Shown here: positions 3,780 to 61,020 of the stretch, piece by piece
How the letters are laid out: every line of letters starts with the position of its first letter
Position numbering within the stretch: the stretch's first letter is position 1
Assembly: GCF_006345805.1 (NCBI RefSeq)
Contig: NW_021836126.1
Location: forward strand, 324,484 to 388,483
Length of the DNA: 64,000 bases
Reading direction: 5' to 3'
Source of the DNA: Octopus sinensis
Taxonomy: Eukaryota
Position numbers and translations under genes: made by a program
Notes under the pieces: model-generated
Told to the model about the DNA's origin: nothing
The model's input: only the letters and a program-made list of their open reading frames with translations
The model's database searches: none

Positions 3780-4670
3780 TACCACTCAGAATGCGCTCTC
3801 TCTCCATTTGTGACTTGTCCCCGTGAATAGAGGCCGACCTGTAGCCGAGGTGATTAATATTCCACGACACTTCATCCGATTTCCTTTTGGTCTCACAGAA
3901 CACGAGTGTCTTGTTTTGCTTCTCTTCCATTATACTCCTGAGAATAGACTGGAACCTGACAAATGAACAACTCGACTGACCGTTCGTCACGATTATAGTC
4001 GTTCACCACTTCCACAACCTGCGTAATATTGTGGTTGGAACAAATGTCGGGGTTTCCGATCGTGATGTGGTGGTACCGACTTTGGTACCGACAAGTCGAT
4101 GCACTGCTTTCGGCAACGTCGTAGAAAACATCAACAAACGACGATCAGGCTAAACAATCAATCAACCACACAACCCGAATAATAATTCGGATTTAAGGTT
4201 CGAAACCGAGGTCTAACATTCGGTCAGCCTCTTCCATGATGAGTAGAAAACACCTTTTCGACAAATCCACAATATCCTGTTCAAGAAAGTCAATCAGAGG
4301 CCCAGGAGTGGCCATAATTATTTGTGCCCCTAACTCAGTCCATAAACCCTCACGGACTTCCCTGATCTGCCTCCTTCTTTCTGCCCCTCCATACACACAG
4401 ACCACCTTGTAGCCCATCATCAAATCATTGGAGACAGCCTGCACTTGCTGAGCCAATTCCCTGGTCGGCACCAACACCAGAACCTTGAAATACTACACAA
4501 CGATTGGACCGTCGCCTCTCCGGACAGGGGACATGCTAGCAATATGATCCATGGCGGGAATCAAAAACTAAAGAAAGTCACCGAGGGAATGAAACAGCCA
4601 ATGTCTTCCCCGACCCAGTCTGTGCTATCCCAACCATATTGTTTTTTATTAGCATTAGAGTTGGGCCCCA
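3780..4670 (-). pseudogene. DDX5: DDX5/Dbp2-like DEAD-box helicase pseudogene fragment retaining introns
   Basis: MVGIAQTGSGKTLA, LVPTRELAQQ, EEADRMLDLGFEP*, IHGDKSQMERE. Introns of 18-28 nt, an in-frame TAA and a 10-bp duplication frameshift at 4071-4092. Confidence 0.9.
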
Positions 4671-5744
4671 CTCTTCTCATCGTGGAAATCTTGACGCATT
4701 TGACTCTTTTATTGTACTGTTCTCTGCGATGACAACGACCAATCTTTCGACGTCTCTTCTCTGTCTTGGGAATCTAGAAATGAACAATTGCTGTCCACTT
4801 TGGGAGTCCGATTCCGCACTTTGCCGACGTGCATGAGCGATCCGTGCTGACGACCTGTCATCTACACAACATTCAGACCTCCATGACACTTTATTCTCTT
4901 TTGATTTGAAATAAATTTAAATTCAATCAAAAAAAAAGTCTTTAAATCGAAAAATGTTTGTTGAGAAATGAGGTTTTGCTGTTTTAAAAAAAATTTCAAA
5001 TTAGACGGAAAAACAAAAAAAGTGTTCCTTGATAAAATCACAAGCCGAATCACAAAGCTTTGCTATGGCCTAAACGAGCGAATTTATTTTTCAATATGCT
5101 CAGGTAACGCTCAAAGTGGTCAATGGCCTCTACTCCGGTGTAAAAATCAAAGAACTTAACAATCTGGCTGCAGATTTTCAGTCACAATATTATCTAGAAA
5201 TGTTTTAGATCCGGCGGATCAGTTTTACCGTTATATCCACAAGGAGACATCGAGACCATACCCCCTTGTGTATAAAAATCTATATAATATAGTCCAAATC
5301 CATAAACAAGTTTATGATTGATTTCATTAAAATAGACTATTAACGACGCAATCAAAAAATTTTTGAACTTCAATATCATGTGGTGTTTTATAAGATTATT
5401 CACCAATGACTATTAAATTTAGTCTGTCGGAAAAACATTTTCGTTAGAGAACATTCGAAATCCGAATTATAGAAATTACATATACCGTGAATCCATTTAG
5501 TTTTTTTACATAAAAGTGATTTTCCATTTTCAATTCTAATAACGAAGGGTGAAATTCGATTTTCAAAAAATATGATCATTGTTTGGAAGCTTAGTCGAAA
5601 AAAAATGATTTGGTGATGAAAATAGGTTATTATACTTTTCAAAAAACATCAAAATACTTTAAATTCTTCGAACTATTTTTATGTTTTTGGAATTATGTGC
5701 ACAAAAATCTTTATAAACAAATTTTCTTAGCGCCCCAGTAGAAA

Positions 5745-6215
5745 ATGTCATCAGAAAATGGTGAAACGTCGGAATCCAAATCAGATGAATCTTTTCGACA
5801 ACAAAGGTATTTTTTAATCAAAAATAGCGAATTGTCTTCGAGTACCTCCAATTCTTACGACTCTTTTGACGGATATGAAGTCAAATCTCAAGAATCTCCC
5901 ACTGAGGAAAGGGAAAATAGTAAATCACCGATGAGCTCTGATTCCTCAAACGTTGAACAAGAGAATTCCGGAATCTGTTGTTCTTGTAATCGTATTTACA
6001 ACGAGAAACAACGACAGCCACTAATCTTACCCAAATGTAGACATACAATATGCAGAAGATGCATTGTCAAACAACTTAGTGTTACAGGGTGGACAATTAA
6101 ATGCTCCTTTTGTGAGAAAAAAACAGAACTTCCCCTCCAGAATCGTTTATCGGTTCTCAGATTAAATAAATTGGCTCTTCAACTTTCTATTATTAAGAAA
6201 AACACCGACTTTTAA
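5745..6215 (+). CDS. Small RING-HC finger protein with a Ser/Glu-rich N-terminus
   Basis: CxxC...CRHTICRRC...CxxC motif. Possible in-frame 21-nt intron gtattttttaatcaaaaatag. Confidence 0.8.
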   Translation: MSSENGETSESKSDESFRQQRYFLIKNSELSSSTSNSYDSFDGYEVKSQESPTEERENSKSPMSSDSSNVEQENSGICCSCNRIYNEKQRQPLILPKCRHTICRRCIVKQLSVTGWTIKCSFCEKKTELPLQNRLSVLRLNKLALQLSIIKKNTDF

Positions 6216-7861: not shown

Positions 7862-9148
7862 ATGCCTAAATCAAAAAAATCTAATGAATTCAAACTCTCT
7901 AAAATATTAAATAAATATCCGTACGAATTTACGAGAAGTACTAATGGGGGACTTAATTGCAAGTTCTGTTGTGTTCCGCAAATTGGTGTATGATAAATAT
8001 CTTCTAAATTTTGAACGAATAAAAAATCTTATTTTAAATTTGAAAATATTTTTGATTGTTGATGAAACCCAAATTTCAAATAATAAATTTGTGAATGTTT
8101 TGGGGAGACTATTTGTAATCCATCGAAAATTTATCTATTAAATTGCATTTCTGTTGAAATATGTAATGCTTCAGTTATTTTCCAGATAATCGATGAAACT
8201 TTAAAGGATTTTAACGTCAAACGATTTAATTTTGTTTTATGGTTATCGACGCTGCATCATACATGATATCTGCTCCAGAAACATTGTCAATTATGTATAA
8301 CAATGTTATACACATCACTTGTTTTGCTCATCTTTTACATAATTGTGCCTTAAAAATTAGTACACACTATGGGGATATTAATAATCTGATTGCCACGATG
8401 AAAATTGCATTGCTCAAAAAAAATCTTGAAGAGATCTTTTTGACAATATAGAATTACCACCTGAAGTAATAATTACAAGATGGGGAACTTGGCTTAGTGC
8501 AGCCTTTTACTACTCGAAAAACATGCATACAGTTCGCACTATAGTTTCTGGTCCTGAATTTAACAAAAAAGGGAAAATCTTAGATAAAGTAAAAACTGCT
8601 TTAGATTTAATTAATTTGGAAAGAAACCTTGCATTGATAAAATCGTGTTATAGTGACATATTAGATGGATTACATCAATGCCAAGAAACTTTTTTTACCA
8701 TTGAGGATGCCGTTAAATTTATTAATGTGATAAATTTTGGGGATGATCTATGGGGAATATCTAAATATTTCCGTAAAAGAATAGATAAAAATCGATTAAA
8801 AGAAATTTATACTGCTAAGATTGATAATTGTTCACCAGAAATTTGTTCGATATTATGGAAATGTCCAGCAACAACTATTTCCATTGAAAGAAGTTTTTCT
8901 ATGCTTCAAAAGATGTTGGAGAAGGATAGAAACTTTAAAAATGATAACATTAAATATTACTTTTCGTTATATTGCAATAAATTTGAGTGATTAGTTCGAA
9001 ATATAAGTCTTATTAAAACTTTATTAATACATAAAATAAAAATTTATTAGGTCATATTATGGGCATATATTTTTTCGTTTAAGGTCATATAAGTCATATT
9101 TTATCGGTCATATTTGAAATTTTTTAGGTCATATTTGCGGTTGCCCTA
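7862..9148 (+). mobile_element. Degenerate hAT-like (DUF659/CGGBP-type) transposon
   Basis: LIVDETQI, HITCFAHLLHNCA, TRWGTWL, ISIERSFS. GGTCATAT subterminal repeats and end GGTTGCCCTA. Confidence 0.8.
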
Positions 9149-10020: not shown

Positions 10021-10399
10021 AGTTATAGCAGTGAAAAATGTAATTTAGTTAGAATTAAGTTTTCGTTAATGAGTTTGTGATCACTTAATTATCAAATCAA
10101 AAAAAATATTTGGTATTTTTGTTAGTTGACCAATTTTCTAGCAGATAAAGAAATCAATGATATACAGAAACACAATAATTTTGATTTTTTCACAATTAAA
10201 GATAGAATAAAGAAATTGAGAAAAAATTTCTTTTGTAAATTGCAAGAAATCTAAAATATTTAGAATGTAATAAAATTCGTAATTAGTTAAGAAAAATTTC
10301 TGATATGGGATTTGCGGTCAAATGGACTTAATTTTATTATCAAAATATGCGATATTTGTGTAACATTCTATAAAAAATGGTTTGTAGAAAAACACAAAT

Positions 10400-11445
10400 T
10401 GATGCAAAAACATAAATCGCATATGAACAAGCCTAAAAAGAGCATTCAAAGGTTTTTTCCCACTACTGTTGTTACTAATGATTTTTTGCTCAATCTAACT
10501 AAATCATTTGTTTCAGCAAATATTCCATTATATAAATTACGGAATCCTGCCTTAATAAATTTTTTTAATACTATTGGATTCGAGTTACCTTCAGAATCAA
10601 AATGTCGAAACAATGTCAAAATTTTGGCAGAAAGACGTGTTAGTGAGATTATCCAATTGTTAATTAATGAAAGGATTTTCTTAATTGTTGATGAGTCTGA
10701 TGCCGGTAAAGATAAATTTGTCAATATTCTTATTGATACACAATTGTGGTTTAAGGATAAAACTAAGTTACCTTACAGTGGATAACTTAATTGCCTTCAT
10801 TAAAGGACTTGTTCTCAAAAACAGTAGTCGAAGGCAACTATTTTCTGAAATAGGACTACCTCTAGAACCTATTGTTACTAGATGGGGAAGCTGGCTTTGA
10901 GCAACCAAGTACTAGGTGGAACATTTTCTCAGAGTGTTGGAAATATGCAATTCGTTAAAAGGAGAATCCCTATTGATTCGGAGGGCAAAAGAATCAATAA
11001 ACCATGAAGGACTTGTTAATGATTTAAAAGAAATATGGAATCACTATTCTCCACTTGCAGATGTTTTTCCTGAAATTGAGTCCACAAACTTTTTAATCGA
11101 GAAGGCTATTAATTTTTTGAAAATACTCGATCTGAAAGAAGATACCTGCAAAATAAAAGAATATATTGATAAAAGAATGAATAAGAATGAAATTATGAAA
11201 ATTGTTACGGAGAAGAATATTTTTCGCCTATGGAAAAGTTGCGACTACTCCAATGTCAGGCAACTACATGTTCTGTGGAGCGTTCATTTTCAATTCTCCA
11301 TAAAATTTAGGCAAAAGATCGGAATTTTAAACCGGAGAACCTTAAATTTTATATGATTCTTTATAACTCCTGATTTAAAAAAAAATTCTTGGCTCTTTAT
11401 AGGTCAACTTTTTGATATTTTTGGGTCAACTTTGTGATTACCCTA
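10400..11445 (+). mobile_element. Second degenerate hAT-like (DUF659-type) transposon
   Basis: VSANIPLYKL, LIVDESD, PIVTRWGSWL. GGTCAAC repeats and end GATTACCCTA. Confidence 0.8.
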
Positions 11446-12330: not shown

Positions 12331-13740
12331 AAAATATCGGAAAAATGGAATTTTTCGATATAAATATTTGAAATTTTATTTAATGAAAAAATAAAATAAT
12401 AATTTTTTACCTAGTTTTTAAATATAGTTGAATATGCTAAATCTATCTCCTCTCCATTCTTTTTAATCGCATTCTTCAATCAAATTGCTTACCAAAAACT
12501 CAACAATGTGAAAAAAGATGCCGTTAAATATGCCTTTTTAAACCGAATCTTGCAGTTATACGAGGACTGGCTGGAACAGGAAAAACCGCTGTCTTAATAG
12601 AAATTATTCAGCAGTTACTTATTGATAAAAATAAACGAGTTATTATATTTTTCAAATTTAAAGATATTGGTAACTGCTTTTCGAATACTGCTGAAAAAAT
12701 TGCATTAATTGCAACAACACTGGGCAACTGGCGGGCTACGATGCCCGATAAATGCACGGGTTGCAAAGAATCTGGCAGCTAAAAAACCGGTCCACTGGGC
12801 AATGTCGACAAAGCACTTAAGATGGTTGTCGCCTCGCGTCACAAAATATTTGGGATCTGCGCAGTCGAACCCATCACGTTGTGTTTCTTTTGGGGGTATG
12901 TTTTTCTCATAAATTGAATTTTTATTATAATTTTCGATAGTAAATGAGATTAACATCAAACTAAGTGGGATTAGAAGAAAATTAAATGAGATTAACGTCA
13001 AACTAACTGGACTTAATAACGAACTAAATGGGATCAATAAAAGATTACGTTTATTATAAATATTATATTTCGACGCAGAAAATAAAAATGCCACGTAAAT
13101 CATTGGAAGAGAAAAATCAAATACATAGAAATGAAATACATTTAATTTCAGCTGCAGAATCAGGTGGGGATTGGAAAAAAAGGCAATTGAACTCAATATC
13201 TCGAGAACAACAGGATATCGTTGGATAATGGATGGAGTTAAACCTGACACGAGAGGTGGAAATTATAGAAAAAAGTTTGACGAAGAACATATCGACTTTT
13301 TTATATCATGCATTGAAGACTATAGCACAATTACCCTTCATGGAATAAAACGAAAATTTGAATTAATTTTTCCGAAATTATCAATATCAAGTATCGCTCG
13401 ACATCTCGATCTAAGTTTGTATACATTAAAGAAATTGAGATTCGACCCTGAAAAAGCTAATTGTGAAATTAACAAAATCAAGAGAAAAAAATTTGTTAAA
13501 AAATATTTAAAATTTAATGATTTTCACATTCTTCGTCTCGGTCCGTACAGCCCAATGCTTAACCCCATACAAAATGTATGGTCAAAAGTAAAAGCTCACA
13601 TGAAAAGAGACATCTCTTCTAAAAAAACCAAATTTTATTCCAACAAGGAGAAGGTTTGTCAATTAAAGAGTATCGAACACGGATACTTGAACAAATAATT
13701 GTTATGCAACGAATAAAGAGTCTTGAACAAATAAAGAGTC

Positions 13741-16700
13741 TGTTATGCAACGTGCTACTATCTCGATGTGTGCTCTACCTGGACAACAAGAAACTAACAA
13801 TATTATTAATAATAATATACCTAGAGCAGGATGGACAACCGCATCGGAGAGACAGACGTCCGATGGCAAGAACATCGTCTTTGCCATTGCTGAAGGGATC
13901 GAGTGCACGACCCGGGAGGACTGGGTTAAATCCGCCCTTTCCCAAGTGTTGGGAAGAGCTTCCAGGATGCCCAGAAATGGGTGGCCTACCCTGCTTCAGT
14001 GTTTCAATCGACGCTTTAGCTCGAACCTATCGTTAGATGCACTGAAGAAGCTGGCCAAGACCCCTCCTCCTGGCTCGCGGGGGAGGACTGCCGCTGCGGT
14101 TACGCCGTCAGGATGCCCCCCGTGTTCTGAACAACACGAGCACCAGAGTAGTGAGTTATCGCTACTCTTGCAGGTTAAGGAGATATTTAGTAGGCATATC
14201 TCTGCGAATCGTGTTGTCCCCCTTGCGGACCGCAGAGTGACCCGAAAGATACCTCGGTGGCAACTCAGAAGTGACGTGATGGGTTGCATCAATCGTGCCA
14301 TAGCTTACGCGATCGTGCGTGAGCCTCCGGAGACAATGGACGAGATTTCTCTTTATTTGTACTCGGCACAGACAACCTATGATGAAATCACTCAGAGGCC
14401 TGCCCCAAAGAGTAGATGGAGAGAAAACATTGCCGCAAAAGTAGCCGCAAGGAAAGCCGAGCTGGAAGCGCTGACTGGGCACATTTTGAATGTGAGCAAT
14501 GGGGTCAAGGGCAAGACTCCCCCCTTGGTGCGTACTTTACTTCGTCGGGAACGAGCTGCCAAATGGGACCTCAACGAGTTGAGGCGTGTCCGGGCAGAGA
14601 GGGAGGAGCTGATTCTCGTTTATCAGAAGAAGCTCTCAACTCATGAGTCTCGGTGTCAGCGCAGGCGGGAGAACAACCTGTTTGAATTTAATCGCAGGTC
14701 GTTCTATCGTCGGTTGCACGGAGAGACGAAGGAGGGTACCCAGCAAAAGGCCGAAATGCTTGACACATGGGGGAGTATGTGGAAAGCACGTCCTCGCAAG
14801 GGTGTGTCGTTTCCGTTTTGTGGACCCGATGCTCCCTTGATGACCGAGTCTTGTGGTGTCTCTGACATCCGCAAGAAGTTCGATGAAGCAGTAACCCGTC
14901 TCTCTGACTGGAAGACACCTGGGGTCGATAAAGTGTATAATTTCTTTATTAAAAATTGCAAACCTATCCATGATTGCATGTGTCGAGCAATCGAACAGTT
15001 TACACTAGACCCTGGCTCGATTCCAGAGTGGTTATGTACTGGGGTCACTTATTTGATCCCTAAAGTAGATAACCCTTCCGCTCCGACAGATTATCGTCCG
15101 ATAACCTGTATGCCCAACCTGTACAAGTTGATGACTAAGGTGGTGGCTACTGAGGTCAGAAATTTCGTGGAGGTGAATGGGATTCTGTCCGAGAACCAGT
15201 TAGGTACTCGGCGGGATTGCCAGGGAGCTAAGGAGCAGGCACTGATCAACAAATGCCTCGCGAGAGCCCACGGAAACTCACTAGTGTCAATGTGGGTGGA
15301 TGTGAAGAAGGCATATGACTCGGTTGATCATGCCTACCTCGTTGAGTGTCTGCGAAGGCTTAAGTTGCCAATGTGGTTTATCAAATTTGTTGCAACTGTG
15401 ATGGACAGGTGGAACGTCCATCTAAATTACAACAAATGCGATATAGGCGAGGTGAAACTAGAGAGGGGCATATTACAGGGCGACAGCATGTCTCCGCTGC
15501 TGTTCGTCCTCTGCCTAGAACCGCTGAGTAGAGTCCTCACTGCCCAATTCGAACAAATGTCGATCGAACATGAAGGAGGGTGTTTTAGCACCAACCATCT
15601 CATGTTCATAGACGACATTAAGCTGTTCGCTCGGTCTTCAGAGATCCTTCACTCAATGGGTAAAGTCCTGAAAGGTTTCATGAAGGCCGTGGGGTTGGAG
15701 CTCAACTACAACAAGTCGGCGACTAACACCCCTGTGTGTGGTGACCTAGTCAAAGTCTTGGAGGAACACCAAGGATATAAGTATCTTGGTGTGGTTGAGA
15801 GTCCAGCCTCATTAATCACACCCGAAACGAGAAAGTGTGTAGTGGAGGGTGTGCGTAGTAGGGCGGCAATGTTATGTAAGACTCGGCTTAATGCACGGAA
15901 CTTATTTCATGCCTTGAACGAGTATGCCATCTCATTGCTAAACTACTACGTTGGCCTGATCGAATTCGAGCCGAGTGAGTACGATGAAATGGACCTTATT
16001 GTCCGAAGAGTACTCCGAGAGAATCATGTCCACGTGTTGGCAAGCAATAAGGAGAGATTGTACTTGTCTCGCGGGCAGCTAGGACGTGGACTGAGTAACA
16101 TCGTACACTTAAGTGAGCGAATTCTTACTAAGATGCACGACACCTTGTGGAGTGGGTCGAGTGTATCCCAAAGGAAGGCTGCCATCCTTGCTGCTGAAAA
16201 AGCGCGTGGTACACACCTAGGGACCATAAAAGGCTATGTGTCGGCTAAGTATGGTCTAGGTGCTACCCAAGTTAATGTGAAGGAGTTGATCAAACTTCAA
16301 AAGGAGTCTTTAATTAAAAAGATCAACTTAAAAGTCCTTCACAAGACTCTCTTTAGCAGCCTGGACAACCCGCACATTGACGTATCGTCGTCATCTACGT
16401 GGCTGAAATATGGGAATAACTCTCCCCGATCAGAAGGGTTGTTCTCATATTTGCAGGATAGAAACTTTTTTAATGGTCAACGGAAACAGTGTAACCACTG
16501 TAAGAGTAAGGCAATGACCGTTGACCATTTAGCCACGAAGTGCGGGAGTATGCTTTACCATGATTACACATGGAGGCATAACGAGGTGGTGAGGTCCCTC
16601 CATCTTTTGCTCTGCAATAAGTACGGCTTGAGGCGGTCCAGAAAGTTGCGAACCCATCGAGTTCAATCGGTGTGTGAGAACTCGCGGGTGTGCATTAAGG

Positions 16701-17247: not shown

Positions 17248-17403
17248 GTAGATAGAATGAAAACAATTACATCTAAAGATTATGTACAACTTTATTTCTG
17301 GAATACAGGGAAATATTGCTGACACACTAAATATGGTTAACATAAAATTTAAACAAACAAAACTCTTGAGCTACTCGTAAATATCAAATTCAAACCTTCA
17401 GAC

Positions 17404-46899: not shown

Positions 46900-47560
46900 G
46901 AGTTCCCCCTATCAGTGGTAACACTGTAGCCAATAAGAATTCTCCCATCTCGTGGAACTACTATATTCTTGTGTTATCTTAAAAAAACATAAAGCCGAAT
47001 TTTCCTATGCATGTAATGTTTCAAAAAACGACATTCCACACTTGAATGGCTTTCTCAATAGTGCAAATGTAAACAGAACGACGGCTACGTTTAACTGGTG
47101 GCAACATTCCTCGTCCTCCTGCGTATTCCTCTACCCGAAAGTCCAACTCGACCGAAAACTCAGTAAACGAGTCGACCTTCTCCTTTACAATAGCCACAAA
47201 TGGAAGGACGATAATCACATTTTTTACTGTGGCACAATATTGTTCGGAGAGTGAGAAGCTCTGCCATCAAAGTCTTGCCTCCGCTAGTCCGCTAGTGGAA
47301 GAGATATTATCAGGTTCCCTCCCGAACGAATTGTGGGCATTGACAGGGCCTCCACCTGCCAGTCTTGCATTGATAATTAAAGCCGAATACCATACAGCTT
47401 TCGATGCCACGACGATAACGCAATATTTCTTCCACTTTTGAAGGAAGGCCATAAAAACTTCCCACTGCGGACTGAGATGTCGAGTCGTCTATTTTGGCTG
47501 TCACTTCCAGTCGTTCTTGTGTGTTTTGATAGTTTTCGTTGAGCAAGTCTGTCTGAGAAC
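46900..47560 (-). pseudogene. HELQ: HELQ/HEL308 helicase N-terminal fragment
   Basis: FYGLPSKV, LPTSG(G)KT, LPFVAIVKEK, VEEYAGGRG, ICTIEKA. 8-bp duplication at 47281-47296. Confidence 0.85.
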
Positions 47561-48319
47561 GGAAATCTGCTATCGAATTTTTATTTTATGTGAGTCTCCG
47601 TCTTAGGTCACTGTGAAGTGAAGGCTTTTCTTGCTTAAGGTTATTTTTAATTATGTTTTTGTTTATTGGAAAGCTGATTTGCTGTGACATTACTTTAAAT
47701 TTCGATCAATAATGGACAAACCAAAAACACCACTTAACACTATTTCCTAAACCGCCGTTCAAATTTAAAAACAAAATTATATTTTGGGTGTTAATTGATG
47801 TTTGTTTCGTCTAAGAACTTAACAAGCCTTAATGAAATTTATTACTTTTGAATCCTGGACGTTGGTTAGACCCATTTAACTCTCATGAATGCAAAAATTG
47901 TTCTTACTTCCTTTGATAGAAAGGCTTTTGAGAATTACGAGCTTCATGTAAAAGGAACCCTAGCAGTCTGACGTTTTTCAAAGGGCACATGACCTTCAAT
48001 TTTGTTTAGTTCCTTCGGAAAATTCTAATTTTTTGCATTCAAATTATGCTAAAAATAAGCCCGACTTTGTTACTTGGTCATAAGAGGGCTAGTTGGTTTC
48101 CGTCAGTACAGAACACAAATGGTTTTAAATCCTAACAATTGATAAAACTGTGTGAGTTCATGCGCAGTTTGTGAGTCAATGTTTAACGTGATTAATTTAA
48201 AAACTTTGTATTTAAATTTCCTTTTTGTCCGATACAATTAAACCGGAAATTATTTTCAATTATTATTTTTTGTGAACTAACTTGGTACCTCACATTGTAC
48301 ATAAACTACTCATTAGAAC

Positions 48320-48891: not shown

Positions 48892-50406
48892 ATGGATAAT
48901 TCTCAGTTTTCTCGAGAGTATTCAGTTCGTGACCCGAGCTATTCTAATCACTGAACAAAACTAGAACAAAAAATAAACGTTTTCATCTGCTGGCATTCGG
49001 ATCAGGCAACTAAGTCAAAGTTTCAAAAAGTTCAAAAGTAACCAACTCTCCCCACATCACCAGATCTCTATGCAACGGGAAAACAATCTCCGTGAATACA
49101 AACTCGCCAACGACAGCGACGTGGTCCCCAAATACGGTGCCGGGACTGAATACGGAAAAGACTTCCGCGATGAAGCCAAACGACGGAAATACGGAATAAA
49201 ACGGGAAGATTACAGTGTAGATGACCAGCCGTGGATTTACAGACAAGGAATTGGAAAGGACACGAGAAAGTGTGTTTATTCGTCATTTCCAGGTTCAAGG
49301 GAGTAAAGGAAGGACAAATAAACCAAAACGCGGACTACTATGTGTTTATGCAGAACAAGGACGGTGTTTTCGACGCATATCTGGTCGATTCAGTCTACAA
49401 AATGTATCCGACAGGTCGATATAAACATTTGTCGATAGATGAGGCAGAAAATGAATATAAAAAGTATATTTTCCATTTATAAATAGACATGATAAATATG
49501 TGGATCACTACCAGTTGATGATATCCCGAAGAATGAAGAAAGAAGACGAGGACACGTCTAATGAGTCGAGGACTAAGGATTTGGTAGTTTTGTGTCTTAT
49601 TTCCAGATTCTTAGAAGTGGGGGAAAGACCAAACCACAGTCCCAGCCCACAGAGAAGGATAAACCCAAAAATATTAAATTCAATGAGGATAACGAGGCAT
49701 TGGACGAATCAGGAGAAGACAGCAACGGGGAAATGAAGGAGGTTTATGACTCATCCAGGTTTATAAGTAAAAACAGTTTAAAGTGAGAATGAAACAAGCA
49801 GGGAAGTGGGAAAGTATTCGGAGAAGGGGGTGATGGAGGAGTTGGTTGAGTCCGAATCCAATGATGAGGTCCCAGTGGCCGAGACTACTAAAGATAGAGA
49901 GGTTTCTGATGCCAGGAAGGAGGAACAAGTCAAACGAGGACAAATATCAGGTTGGAGTGTGTTGTGAGTGTGTTTTAGACAGTGAGGACACCGAGGACAG
50001 AGTGGAGATATCAGGAGGGAGTGATTCTTCTATCATTCCTGACGAGGATATTTATGATGAATTCGATGTGGGGAAACGAAAGTCCAAGCCAGAAGTGGAC
50101 TCCCCTGCCAAGCGACCGGTTAGCAATGATTTGGATGTGGTGGAATCTCCTCGAATTGCTAATAAAGTGTTCAAGTTTGTGGTTTAGTTTTATTGTAGTG
50201 AAAAACTGTCGATTCAGGCAGTTGAGTGGTGTTTGGAGAATCGTCCTTATCGTTTTAAGCATTTGTTGAGTTTGTTTATGAAGACAACCCCCGAATATAG
50301 TAAGCAGGAGATGAGCACTGAGCTGTTTAATATACTCGGACGACTGGACGTGCAGACAATCAAAATCGGCACATATCAACACATGTATATCAAGTCACGC
50401 AAATAA
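48892..50406 (+). pseudogene. GTF2F1: TFIIF alpha (RAP74), full length but with 5' lesions
   Basis: PKYGAGTEY, KRRKYG, DQPW, FKGVKEG, C-terminal WH. ~8 tiny introns, the first with a CT donor, and an in-frame TAA near 49009. Confidence 0.8.
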
Positions 50407-50469: not shown

Positions 50470-51557
50470 TGACATTGTTAAAATGCCGGAAACTCTGATT
50501 TGTTTTCCTTCGTCGTAAATAAAGGCATCAGAATCGTCAAGACTTTTCTTACTGGAAATCACCTGAATTCGAAATTAAACTTGGTCGGAAACCTCAATAA
50601 CTTTAATGTTTTTCTTTAGTCCGTGAAAATGTAATAAACGAGGAACGTATTCTTCTGGCTTTACATGAGTGAAACCTGATTCAGCTCCTCCCGACATAAT
50701 GCTTATATAAAACATATAAGACATACACAATCTCTTTAAAATAGCTAAGAAACAGATCCGATTCGTAGCCCTGTACTTGTCGGTATTGAATCGCTCTATC
50801 ATCCAAATAAGTGTCCAATTCCACAGTTTTGTAGGCAGCAGTTCCTTACTCGTCCTATTGTTCAAATGCTAATTCAAGCACTCACTGGAGTACTGTAGGA
50901 ACCAATCCAAAAGTGCAGATCATATGACAATTCCTGGGTTCGAATCTCACTGTCATCATTCCGGCCGAAGGTTCCATGCATATTACATGCAGCCCGGATT
51001 GACGAGTGACGCCGTCAACAGTGATACATCACTGCGGAACCGGATGTCTACATCGCCACAAGCGATAAACACAGATGGAGCAGAGACATCGTTCGTTCGG
51101 ATTCCCCTCGTTCGGATTAGCTAGTTACTAAATAACATGTTCTCTCTCTGTGTTGCACATGCGGGGCTATAAACATTATGGCTTTCGTGAAAAGTGCTAT
51201 AATAAATAAAATAATAATATGACAATTCTCTGCTGTTTTTAGTTTTTTTTATAGGCTTAGGAAGTTAGGGTGATAAAAATACATTTATAATTATGTAGGA
51301 GTCACCATTATAAAATTTCCCGTACAATTCAACATTCCAAGGCGTAACTTTAAAATTCTCGATACATTTAAATTGAATCTTGCCACAATTCTTCAAATTT
51401 TCAAACTTTCTTGGTCACTGTTTTCCCAGGCAGGTTCGAGTTTTGAAGCAGATTCTACGGGTTTGAAGACACGGCTACTTTTAACACTCCTTTCAGTGTC
51501 ACTTCCAAACAAGGCTAAATTAGTTTGCTGTATGTCGTAAATTTTGACTTTTTTCAT
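50470..51557 (-). pseudogene. Gelsolin-like pseudogene split by a SINE
   Basis: [49 protein letters not shown] at a Trp and TAA at a Tyr position. Confidence 0.9.
50934..51216 (+). mobile_element. 5'-truncated tRNA-derived SINE-like insertion
   Basis: 12-bp TSD ATATGACAATTC at 50922-50933 and 51217-51228, B-box GGTTCGAATC, A-rich tail. Confidence 0.8.
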
Positions 51558-51825: not shown

Positions 51826-52340
51826 ATAAAACAACCTGGTTTGATGTAGCTCTATTCTAACGCCTCGTGATAAACGATGTTTATCGTCTGTCCTTCCTTG
51901 TCATATATGAATAAATTTTTTCTTCTGCCTACCCTTGACAGCTCTCCATGTGAAAAGCACTCGCTCTCTAAAATAAGCCAACTACCTTTAATAGCTGTCC
52001 CTGAGCCTGTTAATACTCTCGCTGTCGTTTTTATGAATATGTTAAAAATAATTTTTTATTTTTTTGCCTGGAAGGTTTTAAAGACCTCATCATGTGAGTC
52101 GAGGACATATTTGTTGTTCATTTTAACCAAATTGCAGAAAATGATTTTTGGAGGGAAGGTTTTAGGTACCTCATCATCGATGACATTTTGATATGTTAGA
52201 TTTTGAGTGGAAGGTTCTTGGAAGACCTCTTTATTAGCTAATTATAAGGGGAACAAATTTTCACAATTTATTTGTATTTTCCTAATTTGAAGTTGATGTC
52301 CACAGACAGACTGACAGACACACAGCATATTATTTAGATA
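51826..52340 (+). mobile_element. Helentron/HINE-like element, near-complete copy
   Basis: 5' hairpin GATAAAC-GAT-GTTTATC, ~2 degenerate 95-bp units, CAGACAGAC tract, ATTATTTAGAT end. Confidence 0.6.
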
Positions 52341-52429: not shown

Positions 52430-53270
52430 AACTAATCAGGTGATCCCAGCTTCTCTAAGAGGGTCCTCATTTTTTCCCTGGCGTTCTTCCCTTTTTTCCA
52501 TACATTTTTTGTGGAGGCGCTGCGGGTGTGTCATCGGGTACGTCGTGCCCACGTTTCTTCACCAGGTCTCCTCAAAAGTGGCAGCATTTAGTTGTTCGTT
52601 TGGTTCTTCTAGAGTTTTGCACATTCTTGATTGAATTTTCGAAATTTTTCCCCGAATAGTGTAGCTGATCGTATTTCCCCACGCTGCGCAGGCGCAACTA
52701 ACTGTGGGTTCAATTTACTGTTTATAGACGGTTTGGGAGTGGCGAGGCTCGTCCACTAAACTCTAAGTATGCTGAGTTTCTCACTTCGACAGGAAGCAAT
52801 CCTTCTCCTGATGCCATCGATAAAGACCATGGTAGGATTTTCTGAGATGCCAGAGGAAGGGGGATAAGTGATATCCCAGGAAATTTTATATTTGTTGATT
52901 TTCGCACGTTCCGCCTTGTTCGCCTTATGGCCAGAGGATAGACCGACGAGATAATATGCGACGCTGGGAACGTGCCCGTACAAGTAGATTACCCACGAGT
53001 AACCTGCCTTCTCGGAATGGAAAATTTTCGTCTACTGTCGTCATGCAGCGGCATTTGTGTGTTAGGCACTGGTTCAATCAGATTCGAAGATTCTGGGGAA
53101 GACGTCTCCGATTAAGGTCCTAGTGGATGTAATAAGAAATAGTTGAGAGTGTGTAAATTCTAAAAGATAAGGGCAACGGCTCCTGGAGATTAAGGAAAAG
53201 CGGGTTTGAGGACTAAGGTTCAATAGGTCCAACTCATTGTCTTCAGACAATTTCAGTGAGCCTCGCAATA
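52430..53270 (-). mobile_element. Possible DIRS-like gag relic
   Basis: KPSINSKLNPQ...TLFGEKF resembles DIRS ORF1 as I remember it. Stops present. Confidence 0.3.
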
Positions 53271-53394
53271 AACTCGGATGATCAAATACATGTCTTTTGA
53301 AAGATACTCAAGCGACTGAAACCACTACGCCCTGAAACTAGTTCGTGTATTTTCGATTTATACTATACAAAGATCGAATTGTAAATGACTTATT

Positions 53395-54865
53395 TTACAT
53401 ATTATGTGTTTTGTAAATAATCTTCATTAGTGTTCTTTTAGAAATACTTTCTTGGAAAGCTAAAATATGAAAAATACTTTTTTCTAAAAACTCATGAATT
53501 TTCGGATTTGAGACAAGTAACCGACATATAGACCGATTCTCGCCACAAAGGGAATATCCATCAGCAAAATCAATGAAAATTCTCAAATATCCGTCAGTCC
53601 CAATATAGAGTAAAGTGGGATTTATATCATGCCCACAAAGTCTATAACGTCCTTTGAAAAAATAATAACCAAAAAGGCAACCAACAAGAAACGATAAAAC
53701 TTGCTGATTAAATTTCGAGCAGCATTGAGATCCATCTGCACAAATAACACTAAGGTTGCCATCTCGAGTACAAATATAAACATCATCAGCTTCTTTGGGA
53801 ATATTATCGATGATTGACTGTATTTAAATGACTACTCTCGCACCATATTAGTCATTTTCTGCAAATCTAAGGTGATTGGAGACAAAATTGAGGAAGAAAT
53901 GACCAAATTGTTTTCGATTAAGTAAAACTTGCCTTCAAATATCAAAGAGGGAAACTACCATCACAGGTGACACAAGCCAATCTTTTTCGGTCTTCATCAT
54001 AGCAAATATCGCCCAAGATTCTGGTATCGCTTGGGAGGTATGACAACTCAGGGTCACCGTCATTAAGCTCTGGTCTGAATATATCAAACGAAAGAAACAA
54101 TCGGAATATTTTTATCTCTTTGGATGGCTGGGAGTCCTTTTTTGGAGGAAAAATGTGCTCATTCAACTCGAGGATTTGAGGCGAGATGCTACAACCGAGG
54201 ACAAGTCCATTTTTATCGTGAAGAGTAAATGAAGAGATCTTGCAGTAAATAAGTTCCCATACCTCCATTGGAATAGGAATTGATCTTATTTTTGTAAAAT
54301 GGTAATTATCAACGTTATATATCAACATTTTATCGTTTTTGTGCAGCAGTATTAACTTCAGCTTTTTCTCGGCCTCTGAAAGATGACAAAAAATGTCCAC
54401 CAATGTATCGAAGGACGGCGGACTTTGGAGCAGAGTTAAGTCGTTGTACCGCGACTCGGTTGTAGTAAGATAGATTGGCCGAGGACGGACTCTAAAATGT
54501 TGGCTGACGCCTAAGTACTGTCTTTCGTTGTGTATGACTGATTATTTGAGCGAGTCCGTCAGTTGTCAGTATAACAATTATAGACTTTCCGGGGGCTGCC
54601 TTTCCAATAAGAATTATATAAATCTATAAATTATGTTAATTTATAACAAAGCCCAAGTCTGAGAGTTTGTAATTTGGAAACGTTTCAGTGCCTTTAAAGA
54701 TCATTAATGTTCCTTGTAAACTGCCGACGACAATCTCGTCTCTCTAATTATAGATTGATCTGCAAATACCGAGTCGTTGTCAGTGTCTCCAACTGCCAGA
54801 GATTTTCTAGAGAAGTTGCCAACGATTTTGATTAGTCTCTGATTGCGCAAGGTAAAATACTTCAT
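53395..54865 (-). CDS. ITFG2: ITFG2 (KICSTOR subunit), 8-10 introns of ~18-30 nt
   Basis: LAVGDTDND|EIVVG, LACVTCDG, ICTRDG, PTLLY. Splices in frame with GT-AG throughout. Confidence 0.8.
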
Positions 54866-55222
54866 CAAGTAAATTTATATAATATTTTTAAATTATTATG
54901 ATAATTCTTAATAGTATTTAAATACAATATAAATCCCAAGTTGTTCATTTATTTAAAACTTACAAATAGGTAGGAGTTTGTCAAAATAAAAAAGGCAGAA
55001 ATTATGATACTGAAAAGGTATAATTATATATGAAGTAGTACGCATTGTGATCCTACTATCAACAAAGAAAAACTGATTGAATGCGAGTAAATACAAAGAT
55101 CCACCAATCGTGAATAATGTTTAATTCAGTTAATAATTCATAGATATGTATGCTGGGCTTTCAACTAGGATGCATTCTTTTAAACGATTTTTCTGTATCA
55201 CTGGGTGTTTCCCATTAACAGA

Positions 55223-55480
55223 TACATCCATTTTAAATTGATTGTTCTTCTTCCCTTTTTCCCTACTTAGTTTTACATCCATTTTAAATTGATTGTTCTT
55301 CTTCCTTTTCCCTTTTTTTCTACTTGTTTTACATCCATTTTAAATTGATTGTTTCTTCTTCCTTTTTCCCTACTTAGTTTTACATCCATTTTAAATTGAT
55401 TGTTCTTCTTCCCTTTTTCCCTACTTAGTTTTACATCCATTTTAAATTGATTGTTCTTCTTCCCTTTTTCCCTACTTACT
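55223..55480. repeat. 51-bp minisatellite, 5 copies
   Basis: TACATCCATTTTAAATTGATTG at 55223, 55274, 55330, 55381, 55432. Confidence 0.95.
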
Positions 55481-55589
55481 TTTTCCACCTGGCTGACTCT
55501 CTCCGTCGGTCTTTTTCCTTTGGATGGACCTATTCTCCTCCAGGCCAATATTTTGGCATAAAAATCTATTGTTGTTCTCAATTTGTATG

Positions 55590-56020
55590 CCCTCAAGTGG
55601 ATTCTTTATAGCTATAGTCTCTATATGGATTTTTATTATAACTGAGGGTATTTTGATGCTGTTTTTAAACCTTGCTGACAATACAGTTTCAAGGTAACAT
55701 CAAAGCCATTATTTCATTTATAATTGTTGACCATCGCTAATTAACTAGCAAGAAGTTCATATTCGTCCATCTTATCAACTTCTAGGTGTTTCTGAAAAGT
55801 TATCTTAATAAAAAATGATGGTTTTCTTCTCTTCCAGTACAAATATATCCGACTATTTAGACTGGACTTTGGTTTTCGTATTTATTAGTCTATCCACACG
55901 TATTACTTAATTTTAATGGGTCATTAGCGATTGAACAAGTGAGTCTTTAGTTTTTTGATTTTTTTATCCTATATTCTTGACAGAGACGCTCACCGCTTCA
56001 TTATGGCACTTAGATAATCA
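55590..56020 (-). mobile_element. R4-like RLE relic
   Basis: KKLKTH, DIFVLE, YELLAS, IETIAIK across frames. Confidence 0.6.
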
Positions 56021-56089
56021 CTATTCAGGATTTGTCACTATACCATTTTCAGTTAAAGTTTAACAATTTTTATATTAATTTTGACATCG

Positions 56090-56527
56090 ACTCGGCGGGA
56101 TTTCCTTTGGTTCTCGAACCACCGGGCCTTGACCGCGGTAACGGGAAACGTCCTGACGGGATGACCCTTTTCCCTTTTGAGGGTGGAAAAGGCCTCGTAT
56201 AAGACGCAACCTGCTGGGACACTTTTTCTGCTTCTCATTTAACTTCGTGTGCTCTGGAGGCTAAATCTGCTGCTAAGAAGCTGAAGATTTAAAAGCTTCC
56301 AATATTCTGCCCTTTCAAAAAAGTTTTTCGTGGTGCCGATAGCGGTAGAGACGTCGGGTGCTCTTGGTCCTAAGACGGAAAAGTTCCTCCGCAAGCTCGG
56401 AGCCAAAATCTCAATGCGCACTCACGATCCTCGGGAGGTGGACTGGCTATTGCAACGGTTCTCGATCGCCGTTATCCAGGGGAACAGTTTGGCGATCCGC
56501 CAGACCTCTGGCCTTCCCTTCGATTAA
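56090..56527 (+). mobile_element. CRE-like RLE 3' fragment
   Basis: [35 protein letters not shown]. Confidence 0.85.
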
Positions 56528-56760
56528 TCGATATTAATTGATAAACTCACCAGAAATTATTAGTTAAAATAAAATTTTGACATTCAATATTCAAATTTTA
56601 CAATGCGGTATTCAATCAAATTTGAAAATGTGATATTCAATTTTGAAACTTTTTTCATCAATTTTGATATTTTTATGTTGATCTTGACTTTTGCCGATTT
56701 ATCATTTATTTTATATTTTCTGATTTGACGTTTTTGTTTTTGTAAAGAAAAAATTCAAGA

Positions 56761-57560
56761 GTGTCAGAAGCTACAAGAAAAGCACTTATAAATAAGAATG
56801 AAAAGGATGGCGATTATATACAACTTGCTCGCGATCTTGGTGTCAAGAGGACAACAGCTATAACCATTGTAAAAAGTGGAAATCCGTATTTTTGTAAACG
56901 TGGAGGTAGAAGGGATGCAACGATTAAACCTACGGATGATATGAATTTGATAATTGAAAAAATTGAGAATAATCCATCGATTACATTGAAGGAATTACGA
57001 AAATTGGTAATTAATAAAGTTTGTATTGGAACAATATAACCGACTTGATTACCTACAAAATGTCGCGAAGAGAACCAATTTCAGGAATAATCCTGAAAAT
57101 ATAGAAAAATATTTACATTGGATTATCAACGTAATACAAATAGAAAAATACATCTGGACGAAATAAATTTCAATCTCTACATTAAAAAAATTCGGCCGAT
57201 CCTATATAGGATCACGTGCGATAGTTCCAGTAAGGGCAAGCAAAGGAGTGAATCTTAACGTCACTTTAACAATTGATGACAATGGAACAATGTGAGATTT
57301 GAATCACAGATTGGATCTATAAAATCCAAATTTAGCAATTTGTGACGGCATTATCTGACAGTTTAGCTGGAGAGGAAATTATTATTTGTATGGAAATTTT
57401 GAAGGCGTGCGAGTAGAATATACAATTCGAAAAGGCTGTTTTTCGATTCTGAAGGCTGGGATAAAGACGTATTTATCAAATCACAACAATCCTCATAACA
57501 ATGTTTATGCAGCAGGAAATGGAACCCTGACGGAATTTCGAACATTATTACTACAAAATG
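56761..57560 (+). mobile_element. IS630/Tc1-like transposase relic
   Basis: LARDLGVKRTTA, RGGRR, IENNPSITLKEL, DEINFNL. Confidence 0.75.
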
Positions 57561-57589
57561 AGTTAGAATATTCTATGAGGACCTGTCGA

Positions 57590-60292
57590 GCCAAGTGAGA
57601 GTGAGTAGTGATGGAGTAGTTTTACGGGGGGAGTGTGGGGAAACAGAGCGAGTGAGCGTGTGGTGGGACGGTTGAGAGAACTGAACGAGAACGTGGTGGT
57701 GAGTGTAGGACGGGGGAGTTGACTATGGAAGTGTTGAGTGAGTATAGGCATTGTGGTGGTGACGGAACAACATCGAAATGAGTGGTGTCGTGGGGCGAAT
57801 ATTCTCATTGATTTTGTGTAATTCGTTGGGCGTGTTTGGGTTGGTGAGTTGGTTGTGATTGTCAGACAAAATATTCTGCGACTTTGGGGAGGCTTCACAG
57901 TGTATGACACGGAACGGGATTGTTCCTCGCCTACTGTTCGTGATTGACAAGTACATTGCGGAAGTGTGATCTGGAGTGGTGATATACGGACGAGCGTCCA
58001 GCGACATCGACGATACGACATGTACTCGACACAATCGTGATCAACGTTTTCCCAAGTGAAAGCAATGAATGGAATAAACGAGCATCCCCCGATGCCTATC
58101 TGACTCATCAGTAACCATCACTCATCATTCAGGCAGTTCGTCCTTCTCCATTGATGCCTCTTTCGGCAAGTACGAGGGAGGAGGAGTAGTCAGGGCTGTC
58201 AAAGGTGCCCGTGGTCATGTCCTTCGTAGGCCTCCCCCTCATTGTAGAACTCTCTCCTCCTACTTCATTGACGACTGTCCTTCCGAATATGCCTCCCACT
58301 CATTCAGGCTTCCGCACCTCCCAATTATTCGTCCCGACTTATCACCGAATGCCCTCAGTCAGGTATGAGGTTTCCCCCTTTCTCCACCAGACTGATACTC
58401 GTGCCTTCCAACAACTGCCCAGCTCCTCCCTCCAACCCTCTTCCTCTCTTATTACTGTGGAGCATGCCCTCTGCCCCATGGACGCAGTCATTGGGAGTCT
58501 GTGTGCTCAGGAAGTCTTCATCAAGGGATGCACGGCAGTTCACATCCCATCCACCAGTGGTTTACTTCTCGACTCTCTGCTCCCTGTGTGTCCCCGACAC
58601 AGGTCTGGTACACCCCGGCAATAGATATGCTGGCCCAGTCCATCTTTTTGGCGACCAAGTAGAACAGACTCATGTCCCTCAACATCGTCGGCATGGGCGC
58701 CATTGGCTGTGAACCTCCTCAAAAACTTTGCAATGATGGGAGTGAGTTGTGGCTCCGGCACTACCTGGGTCATCGACATGGAGAGAATCGAGAGGTCCAC
58801 CACAACAGACAATTTCTCTCTCCGTTCCACCGATATGATGCGCCCTAAATCGACCACTGCAGCTGCGAGCTCGAGCAATCAAGGAACTGAACAAGGACAT
58901 GAACATCCAGGCATTGGAGTATCAAGTCGGCATCCTATATTTCTACTTACTGATTTCTATTCAACAACCAGTTCTAACGCTTCGACAGACTTTGTCCTCA
59001 CTGTACTGCCCTCGACAGACTTGACGGGCACTCACGGAGCAAAGGGGCACTGCCAGCCTGACATTCCCCACCTCACCGAGTCATACTTCTCCAACGACCC
59101 CATCACTCACGACTTTGCCTTCTGCACTGTCCGACACTTCCTCAATTCCATTGAACATTGCATTCAGTTCGCCCTCGACTATTTCCGCGGGGTCTTCTAC
59201 AAACCAGATCGAGGCCGCCCACAAATATACTCTTTCTCTCCTCACTCCTCTGTTCCTCATCCACTTGTCCTCGCTCTCGGATTTCTACCACCCCTGCACG
59301 CTCCCTTTGATTGGCCCCTCCTCATGCGCGTCTCCTGGGCCTTCCGACAGTTCCATGACCACTTTACCAACAATATTTCACAGTTACTCCACAACTTCCC
59401 CCCGATCACGTATTCCCCACCCACACTCACACAGACCACCCACCATTCACGACTCCCTTCTGGGCTCCCCCCAAACGATGTCCTTCCCCCATCACTCTCG
59501 ATGTCGCCAATGTACTCTCCTTTCCTCATCCCAGCCTACTCACATACATATATATCACTCTCGCCGCACACCTCCGAGCACAGTCCTTGGGAATAGTCCC
59601 TCAGTCACTCTCGTCGTGGACATACTCCAGTCACTCACAGTCCCTGTCTTCACTCCCCAGGAGGGACTCGAGATTGGCGGGATGACCAGCAGCCTGTTGA
59701 CCCGGGGGGATGATGTCGGGAGGACTTGGAAAAATGTTTGGTGGAGGACAAGAGCAGGGTCACTCTCACTCCTCTGCAGTACGACAAGGACGACGATGTG
59801 CATGCCCAGTTTTTGACGTGTGTGGCCAACCTGCGAGCACAGAACTACGGAATCGAACCGACGACGGTCTACAATGCTCGATTCGTGTCGGGAAAAATAG
59901 TCCCGGCAATGGCGACAACCACTTCTCTGGTGGTGGGATTGGTGTGCCTGGAGTTTGTACAAGATTGTGCAAAACATGACTGACTTGGAGTCCTACTCGA
60001 GCACATATTCGGGACACGGCTGTCAACCAGTTGCTCAAGTGCACTCCAATCAAGTGTCCTGTCTCCAAGGTTGCCTTCTTTGTTCATTAGGTTACCATGT
60101 TTTGCCTGGACTTTGTGGGATCGCATTGAGATCACTCATAAAATGACTTTGTCCCAATTGTTCGAGTACTTGAGGGACGAGTATCGATTCAACGGTCGAC
60201 GTGTTGTCTCAGGGAAATGCCATTTTATATTCCTTCTTCATGCAGCAAGAGCACAACCACCTAAACAGCGCACTCGTATGGCCATGGAGTAA
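57590..60292 (+). pseudogene. UBA1: Ubiquitin E1 (UBA1) pseudogene, heavily decayed
   Basis: DLSSQ, LRELN, AQEV, LLKNFAMMGV, DMERIERS, IQFALDYF, YDKDDD, GKIVPAMATTT, WTLWDRIEI. Tiny introns and many indels. Confidence 0.9.
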
Positions 60293-60579
60293 CCAACTTT
60301 TTTAAATACAACGAGTTTCATTAACATTATTTCCTATCCCTAATCAAGAGTTGTCTATTTTGGCTTTCTAATTACTTTACTTGTTCAATTAATTCCATCC
60401 ACCCTCCTGACCTTCCAAGTGAGTAGGGATGGCACCTCCTTCCCTGGCTTTGTAGAGGAGGTCAAGTCCATAATACATAGAATCATCTACAGTACCCCTA
60501 CCAGTCCATCGATTAATATGACTTTACACTAGTTCAAGGAATAATCCGAATAGAATGAATAAAATAAAAAGTGAATGAA

Positions 60580-61020
60580 CTAAGCCTCTTCTCCCCACGA
60601 ATCCTCCTGGCGAGTTGAATGTCGGATACCATAATGGTCACTCGTTTCGCATGAATAGCACACATGTTTGTATCCTCAAACAAACTGACGAGATACGCCT
60701 CAGATGCCTCCTACCCAATTACTCCACCAGTCCAACCTGGAGTGCCCCAATGGCCGAGCTTTGGATCTCTCAAATCAGTCTTGTAGTGTTGTGCTGTTTC
60801 CCTCACTAATCTTTGGAAGGGAAGCTTCCTTATCAGCAAGTCCGTGCTTTTCTGGTATCGTCTTATTTCCTTCATAGCCAACGCTCCCGCCCGAAATCTT
60901 CGCGGCGTTTGAGTCCTGCTGCCGCAGTAGCACTTTTACGGGCAGTTTTCACTGACAGCTGCTTTCTTGGCACCTTTGCTCCCGACGATTTGCGTGTGCT
61001 GTGTGCTTGGTTCGTGCCAT
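60580..61020 (-). pseudogene. H3: Histone H3 (H3.3-like, one 26-nt intron) with frameshifts
   Basis: [36 protein letters not shown]|[18 protein letters not shown]. Confidence 0.9.

Follow-up and report, generated by a model that had tools for sequence, protein, structure and literature searches.

How did truncated and decayed copies of about 13 different genes come to lie within 57 kb of an octopus genome? The question is raised by a 64,000-nt stretch of Octopus sinensis DNA (here called the window; RefSeq assembly GCF_006345805.1, contig NW_021836126.1, positions 324,484 to 388,483). An earlier sequence-only reading of it had named eleven decayed genes, had described nearly all of them as keeping their introns and had proposed copying at the DNA level, such as Helitron or Pack-type capture by transposable elements, rather than retrocopying. 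The copies proved to be intronless. The explanation which we favour, with some confidence, is that they are RNA-derived pseudogene fragments, probably non-functional, within a repeat-rich and segmentally duplicated patchwork.

The window contains not a single N and is thus no gapped scaffold. Its GC (guanine plus cytosine) content varies between 27 and 53%. It was translated in six frames and stop-free stretches of at least 35 codons were retained, while those of low complexity or already mostly covered were dropped. The retained stretches were joined per strand in genomic order and subjected to a Pfam scan; selected regions were additionally compared with PDB sequences. The window is eukaryotic and crowded with transposable elements. 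An Rfam scan of the window gave zero matches.

The gene fragments are real, as the strong E-values are far beyond chance (coordinates in Table 1). Strong statistics were obtained for DDX5/17, IGHMBP2, DDX56, COPA, GTF2F1, gelsolin, UBA1 and H3, weaker ones for ankyrin and NAF1, and further genes are represented at related loci. Ten of the eleven genes named earlier could be recovered in this way, with NAF1 on weak grounds, while the eleventh, HELQ, had no Pfam or PDB match within 46.85-48.35 kb. A nearly full-length copy of an SLC7 amino-acid transporter had been overlooked. The general picture given by the sequence-only reading is thus supported: truncated and decayed copies of housekeeping genes that have nothing to do with each other are crowded together among fragments of transposable elements.

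The copies would stem from at least twelve different host messenger RNAs; most of them are truncated at both ends and they alternate with pieces of LINEs and DNA transposons. The DDX5-like fragment matches residues 95-359 of DDX17 in the PDB with 5.8e-38 and shows at least five frame changes. It lacks the N-terminus as well as motifs V and VI, being truncated at both ends, and its catalytic motifs are changed from DEAD to EEAD and from SAT to STT. The IGHMBP2 copy spans residues 188-550 of ~990 and is supported by Pfam (AAA_12, 2.7e-13) and by SMUBP-2 in the PDB (1.7e-15 over the same residues). In the SLC7 copy, the first 194 codons (N-terminal) are open and the remainder is frameshifted; the DDX56-like fragment is open over 214 codons and frameshifted at least once. 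The COPA fragment starts at about residue 880, ends ~20 residues short of the stop codon and carries at least three frame changes along with an internal deletion of ~30 residues.

All fragments for which an alignment to a reference protein was possible follow that protein colinearly with no gap of intron size, contrary to the claim that nearly all keep introns. UBA1 residues ~350-969 fall into a single colinear alignment of 1.8 kb, and the annotated UBA1-like gene at another O. sinensis locus (L001, see below) is one exon of 1446 bp. In the DDX5-like fragment, successive motifs of DDX17 residues 95-359 are at most 60 nt apart. Residues 18-447 of SLC7 map to 32235-30718 (1.5 kb) and residues 50-287 of DDX56 to 33773-33029 (0.75 kb), residues 297-550 of IGHMBP2 are contiguous in the DNA, and the conserved peptides of COPA, GTF2F1, gelsolin and NAF1 are separated by tens of bases only. 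In vertebrates, UBA1, COPA, DDX5, GTF2F1 and IGHMBP2 are multi-exon genes with roughly 13-33 exons. As the copies are colinear over spans that hold many introns in animal orthologues, they point to RNA intermediates (complementary DNA, cDNA). Intron positions of the parents were assumed from other animals and not read from octopus; if the octopus parents resemble the vertebrate genes, the copies must have come from spliced RNA.

Colinearity is interrupted at two places only, in IGHMBP2 by 11 kb of transposable elements and in H3 by a 26-nt insert. The IGHMBP2 copy is split between residues ~255 and ~297. Since the 11 kb in between is made of recognisable nested transposable elements, it is a later insertion and not an intron. 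The proposed DNA-level origin by Helitron or Pack-type capture is contradicted by the alignments, with the short H3 insert as the only exception.

Part of the window has counterparts on other O. sinensis contigs. A chimeric protein query built from window fragments recovered XP_036356038.1, annotated as ubiquitin-like modifier-activating enzyme 1. Its locus on contig VCDQ01005470.1 (GCA_006345805.1) is termed L001, and two further O. sinensis loci with the UBA1 module, each on its own contig of the same assembly, are termed L002 and L003. The three loci were chosen for carrying this module and hence are not a random sample of the genome. The 90% cluster of the UBA1-like protein has three members on three contigs. 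By blastn, L001 is colinear with window positions 53060-54953, 57493-60303 and 60302-63996 at 90-97% identity; the substitution-only identity between the window and VCDQ01005470.1 is ~98.8%. L001 and L002 have ~9.8 kb in common (UBA1, H3 and downstream sequence rich in EGF and TSP1 domains) with 97-99% identity, while L003 has only 1.4 kb in common with L001 and 1.7 kb in common with L002 (92-96% identity). These are segmental duplications, being separate loci with more than 1 kb of shared sequence at more than 90% identity; L002 might still be a haplotig, but its left flank differs. The left flanks of L001, L002 and L003 all differ. A process of shuffling and duplication, as suggested earlier, is therefore supported by the presence of the UBA1 module at three or more loci with different flanks.

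Homology of the window with L001 is confined to positions from 53060 onwards; left of this edge, the two are completely different. There, the window has the COPA C-terminus, GTF2F1 and gelsolin, where L001 has an intronless N-terminal and middle part of COPA (WD40, second propeller and TPR; Pfam 1.6e-22) and a HIRA-like WD40 fragment. The WD40 and TPR regions of COPA in L001 lie within ~3.7 kb and are interrupted solely by a piece of a long interspersed nuclear element (LINE). Just 82 bp of COPA are common to the window and L001, with 94% identity and unrelated sequence on either side. The right flank of L003 contains adjacent intronless and frameshifted copies of DnaJ and a ferroportin-like gene. 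Given the different intronless cargo at several loci, such arrays exist at multiple loci and are related to each other as a mosaic.

The extent of decay had been graded in the sequence-only reading from two point lesions to shredded copies. This grading was not confirmed in 53-64 kb, the only part with a comparator, where the window shows an excess of insertions and deletions (indels) against O. sinensis that is probably due to assembly errors. In the three blocks compared between window and L001, gap openings and mismatches numbered 25 vs 30, 87 vs 94 and 66 vs 43. Transitions were about as frequent as transversions, and most 1-bp indels adjoin an identical base. L001 and L002, both from one assembly, differ by 13 gap openings vs 123 mismatches in 6.1 kb. 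As the latter comparison is poor in indels and the former rich, the excess is specific to the window. For H3, window and L001 differ by four indels and no clean substitution, and both halves of the L001 copy are open from start codon to stop codon. The UBA1 frame of L002 remains open for ~615 codons, apart from one stop and two frameshifts that compensate each other, whereas the window copy has ~50 additional indels. Judged from these alignments, many window frameshifts in 53-64 kb are probably assembly errors, and the indel pattern is the one typical of long reads from a duplicated region when polishing was incomplete. As an example of such data, the O. vulgaris reference is an Oxford Nanopore (ONT) R9 assembly polished with Hypo (PMC10700109). 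The alternative named by the sequence-only reading, that the lesions are errors of assembly, thus applies in part to 53-64 kb. The COPA, DnaJ, ferroportin and UBA1 copies at the O. sinensis comparator loci are, however, frameshifted and truncated as well, and their status as pseudogenes does not depend on the window alone.

The ends and the order of the fragments bear on the way in which the copies were made. Two runs are co-oriented, NAF1, ankyrin, DDX56 and SLC7 on the minus strand and a LINE reverse-transcriptase fragment, COPA and GTF2F1 on the plus strand. An internally deleted LINE (1188-2978) has its 5' end ~700 bp downstream of the DDX5 fragment, both being on the same strand. Between co-oriented neighbours, the spacing is 670 bp for DDX56 and SLC7 and 220 bp for DnaJ and ferroportin in L003; base-level junctions need the source RNAs. 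A self-comparison of the window revealed no repeats resembling long terminal repeats (LTRs) and no inverted or direct repeats that frame the runs of fragments; Helitron ends were not specifically searched. We infer that the reverse transcriptase of resident non-LTR elements would have copied host messenger RNAs (mRNAs). Template switching or capture of partial cDNAs would be a more likely route than classical L1-type retroposition because poly(A) tails are missing and the fragments are truncated at both ends. The copies would afterwards have decayed neutrally and been shuffled by insertion of transposable elements, by deletion and by segmental duplication. The UBA1 module with H3 and the downstream sequence has later been copied to other loci at the DNA level, as the comparison of loci shows. 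Part of the frameshift load, at least in 53-64 kb, would be uncorrected long-read indel error and not biology.

Several observations count against this account. No poly(A) tract of at least 12 nt was found beside any fragment in the window; its only two A/T-rich tracts of this length, at 23220 and 27245, are not located at a 3' end of a fragment. COPA and DDX5 are also truncated at the 3' end, contrary to simple LINE-type retroposition. The missing poly(A) could be explained by decay or by reverse transcriptases that are independent of it. Target-site duplications were not recognised either; to delimit the inserts, parent transcripts would be needed. Homology searches with the fragments as queries recovered no octopus parent genes. 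The COPA query found relatives at 41-60% identity only, and the matches of the query containing the DEAD box were dominated by generic helicases, with no octopus parent among them. The density of fragments is far above that of processed pseudogenes elsewhere and needs either genome-wide abundance or a special mechanism of concentration. The H3 copy, which bears the H3.3-type 'AIG' residues, contains the 26-nt insert GTTGGACTGGTGGAGTAATTGGGTAG with GT..AG ends exactly between Q93 and E94 (window 60711-60736, minus strand), the site of the last coding intron (intron 3) of vertebrate H3.3 genes, and the same insert is present in L001 at ~12.5 kb. The insert is below normal intron size and could be an intron remnant, the result of a mis-spliced template or a coincidence. 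Finally, the indel-noise argument is based on 8.5 kb of comparison, and the window has two intact LINE open reading frames (ORFs), with 1152 and 596 codons. Together with the open stretches of 214 codons in DDX56 and 194 codons in SLC7, these ORFs indicate that the noise is not uniform; the lesions between 3 and 53 kb are probably mostly real.

The H3 insert at the intron-3 site of H3.3 is also what would best suit DNA-level, intron-keeping copies, whether by Helitron or Pack-type capture, by genomic break-repair capture or through decay after a large gene duplication. The 11-kb split of IGHMBP2 and the multi-copy, mosaic modules could be read in the same way, but no alignable fragment has introns across spans of 250-650 codons, the 11-kb gap consists of recognisable transposable elements and the runs are not framed by terminal inverted or long direct repeats. 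We regard such an origin as very improbable. Another explanation is that nothing special happened at this locus, as octopus genomes might be rich in old processed pseudogenes and any gene-poor, repeat-rich 60 kb might look alike. L001 (COPA N-terminus, HIRA-like) and L003 (DnaJ, ferroportin) were fetched for UBA1 and yet hold more fragments, which agrees with this idea. On the other hand, these two loci were not randomly sampled, one fragment per ~5 kb genome-wide would mean hundreds of thousands of copies, and the literature searched made no mention of abundant octopus retrocopies. An ordinary background of this kind is unlikely, though it deserves to be kept in view. It is improbable, too, that some of the copies, notably the UBA1-like and H3-like ones, are functional, fast-evolving intronless paralogues (retrogenes) broken only by assembly indels. 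Four O. sinensis UBA1-like copies carry NCBI protein annotation, the UBA1 frame of L002 is open over ~615 codons, and the L001 H3 halves, both open, show mostly conservative amino-acid changes. However, the conserved UBA1 sequence in L002 changes frame for ~130 codons and has an in-frame stop, the open frame lies in DNA of 52% GC, where chance stops are rare, and the H3 insert introduces a stop that only the splicing of such a 26-nt intron would avoid.

An array that does not exist in the genome at all, but was assembled from cDNA or concatemer contamination of long reads or from mis-joined repeats, is hardly credible. The window is indeed indel-noisy and disagrees completely with L001 left of 53060. 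Nevertheless, the order of the unassigned segment at 53060-54953, UBA1, H3 and the downstream sequence is common to the window and two separate O. sinensis contigs, the way in which L001 and L002 differ looks natural, and nested insertions of transposable elements within IGHMBP2 are not expected of cDNA contamination. Two further candidates were rejected. An endogenous giant virus or large DNA transposon with cellular homologues was considered since the copies are intronless and divergent; the Pfam scans contained no viral hallmark domain, the copies break off within domains, and the canonical UBA1 sequence is recognisable in its copy in frame-shifted form. Degeneration of syntenic genes on a W/Y or B chromosome was ruled out as degenerating gametologues retain introns. 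Beyond the RNA-derived pseudogene patchwork which we favour, a more speculative form of it, held with low confidence, would be that octopus genomes contain undescribed 'cDNA-fragment islands', in which dozens of host-mRNA pieces are concatenated with LINE pieces and spread by segmental duplication. The pieces may then be joined by a template-jumping reverse transcriptase or by cDNA capture at chromosome breaks, and such islands might, by analogy with pseudogene-bearing clusters of Piwi-interacting RNAs (piRNAs), serve as a source of small RNAs against transcripts of the host or of transposable elements.

Processed pseudogenes, template-switch chimeras and mosaics of segmental duplications are each already known. 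The octopus fragments resemble mammalian processed pseudogenes as intronless copies of spliced mRNAs that are often 5'-truncated, decay by frameshifts and stops and lie among LINE fragments. They differ in the lack of poly(A), in the 3' truncation of several copies and in a density of ~1 per 4-5 kb, which is orders of magnitude over the mammalian average. Template switching by reverse transcriptase has been described as the origin of chimeric retro-pseudogenes, bi- or tripartite, for human L1 and for a Magnaporthe LINE. In a similar manner, the octopus array appears to have co-oriented pieces of different RNAs and LINEs arranged head to tail with no poly(A) in between; candidates are COPA after the LINE reverse transcriptase, SLC7 after DDX56 and, in L003, ferroportin after DnaJ. 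Known chimeras of this type consist of no more than two or three parts, the last of which is usually the 3' end of a LINE or a small RNA, while the octopus runs are longer and occur in both orientations. In the pericentromeric and subtelomeric duplication mosaics of primates, blocks of unrelated gene fragments are juxtaposed and recopied as larger units with differing boundaries. L001, L002 and L003 are similar with 92-99% identity and different boundaries, but primate duplicons retain their exon-intron structure and the octopus units are intronless. Pack-MULE and Helitron capture in rice and maize likewise yields multi-copy arrays of unrelated gene fragments; these are copied at the DNA level and retain introns, whereas the octopus array is intronless and lacks framing repeats, Helitron ends not having been specifically searched. 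Several intronless host cDNA fragments are found together in one orientation in the Bs1-type LTR retroelement of maize, which is similar to the octopus runs, but the latter have no flanking LTRs in the self-comparison. What is unusual here is the density, the combination of absent poly(A) and truncation at both ends, and the later duplication of whole arrays. No description of such arrays was found in the literature searched on octopus and cephalopod retrocopies, including the repeat annotation of O. vulgaris.

Table 1. Positions of gene fragments and other features in the window, with the matches on which they are based.
Feature	Position	Strand	Evidence and remarks
DDX5/DDX17-like helicase core, motif I to just beyond motif IV	3781-4643	-	Pfam DEAD 3.7e-15, Helicase_C 6.6e-08
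IGHMBP2 (SMUBP-2)-like, part 1, P-loop, residues ~188-255	12540-12620	+	
Nested transposable-element block splitting the IGHMBP2 copy	12700-23800	.	
Tc1/mariner piece in the IGHMBP2 block	13135-13695		
Non-LTR ORF of 1152 amino acids, intact	13745-17203	+	Reverse transcriptase, CCHC zinc finger, C-terminal restriction-like endonuclease
Pogo-type DDE_1 piece in the IGHMBP2 block	21426-21914		
IGHMBP2-like, part 2, motifs II to IV, residues ~297-550	23828-24609	+	Several frame changes
SLC7 (LAT / b0,+ type) amino-acid transporter, near full-length	30709-32265	-	Residues ~18-447 of ~485
DDX56-like N-terminal half, Q motif to motif III	33029-33773	-	DEAD 1.1e-09; top database match DDX56
Ankyrin-repeat fragment	35654-36760	-	Pfam Ank E 1.2e-05; other ankyrin families under whole-protein cut-off
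NAF1-like core, Gar1/Naf1 domain and acidic tail, contiguous	41726-42056	-	E 0.0069, under cut-off, plus match by eye
LINE reverse-transcriptase fragment	45108-45590	+	Directly meets the 5' end of the COPA fragment (45595), same strand
COPA C-terminal fragment	45595-46839	+	COPI_C 2.3e-50
Supposed HELQ region	46950-47700	+	No support from any search
GTF2F1 (TFIIF alpha), N-terminal domain and acidic middle	49103-50190	+	TFIIF_alpha 8.3e-28; PDB 1.6e-18; frameshifted
Gelsolin/severin domain 1, contiguous	50491-50921	-	Pfam 1.5e-06; PDB 5e-10; frame changes
ORF-rich segment, open stretches up to 153 codons	53060-54953	-	97% identical to L001 7148-9029
UBA1, C-terminal two thirds, GC ~52%	~57577-60337	+	UBA_E1_SCCH, E1_UFD; tblastn 9e-105 to O. 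sinensis protein
H3.3-type histone, full length	60537-60935	-	Histone 4.4e-25

Among the remaining features, the ORF-rich segment at 53060-54953 is possibly another gene fragment. Pfam and PDB searches over 52.4-54.9 kb found nothing beyond PTHB1_N at E 0.02; an assignment to ITFG2 or BBS9 on that match would be a guess and was dropped. Past the right end of the window, long stop-free stretches with EGF, calcium-binding EGF and thrombospondin type-1 domains (EGF_CA 1.3e-07, TSP_1 7.8e-05) were observed at L001 15700-19500 and L002 19000-21500 (plus strand). They would belong to a further intronless copy or else to large exons of a matrix-protein gene. A 156-codon ORF at 5745-6215 (plus strand) starts with ATG, is serine-rich and acidic at its N-terminus and matches a RING-type zinc finger (zf-RING_UBOX, E 1.8e-4); it may be a gene fragment or encode a protein of a transposable element.

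The window contains various transposable elements, among them LINE pieces and hAT-like ORFs, and further LINE pieces are present in the IGHMBP2 block. The intact ORF of 1152 amino acids within this block has 50% GC amid AT-rich surroundings and belongs to a large LINE family with 568 relatives at E < 1e-30, the top match being 69% identical (HMMER). It may be a young and possibly active element. The 1188-2978 LINE has an (ACAG)n tract at its 3' end, and this tract is followed by a 95-bp satellite at 63-1056 (10.4 copies, 96% identity). The satellite occurs again at L001 19592-20988 with 93-95% identity, ~4 kb past the right end of the window, and as a degenerate copy at 52008-52177; possibly, a LINE family carries it as a tandem-repeat tail at the 3' end. 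Compared with L001, which has 188 bp at the corresponding place, 54953-57493 is a 2.5-kb insertion with a 51-bp tandem repeat (55223-55483), a piece of a LINE endonuclease domain and a Tc1/mariner-like ORF (56761-57039). Two diverged hAT-like transposase copies lie in tandem orientation at 7900-9000 and 10300-11400 (plus strand) with tails that are ~71% identical; a fuller relative was found at L003 14128-15254. A 169-bp tandem repeat at 39829-40234 (2.4 copies, 97% identity) is located directly upstream of a transposase-like ORF (40232-40552).

The decayed copies also affect the annotation of the genome. NCBI lists intronless UBA1 copies as protein-coding, namely, XP_036356038.1, XP_029657523.1, XP_029655530.1 ('UBA1 Y') and XP_029654955.1, and the annotated UBA1-like models extend over 10001-11823 in L001, 10001-12016 in L002 and 10001-10507 in L003. 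The gene model of L002 omits 33 bp as an 'intron' and thereby bypasses an in-frame stop. These protein-coding annotations are likely artefacts. At least four decayed copies are thus annotated as protein-coding in the O. sinensis RefSeq set, one of them under the name 'UBA1 Y', which raises the number of genes artificially and can lead studies of orthology or sex linkage astray. Likewise, frameshift counts in duplicated regions of long-read assemblies should not be taken as evolutionary decay. Cephalopods have active LINEs and heavily reorganised genomes. If the clustering seen here is real and not a genome-wide background, it would be a record of host mRNAs having been reverse-transcribed with unusual promiscuity in the germline of a cephalopod, and the arrays would then be a natural archive of old transcripts in which edited transcripts might be readable.

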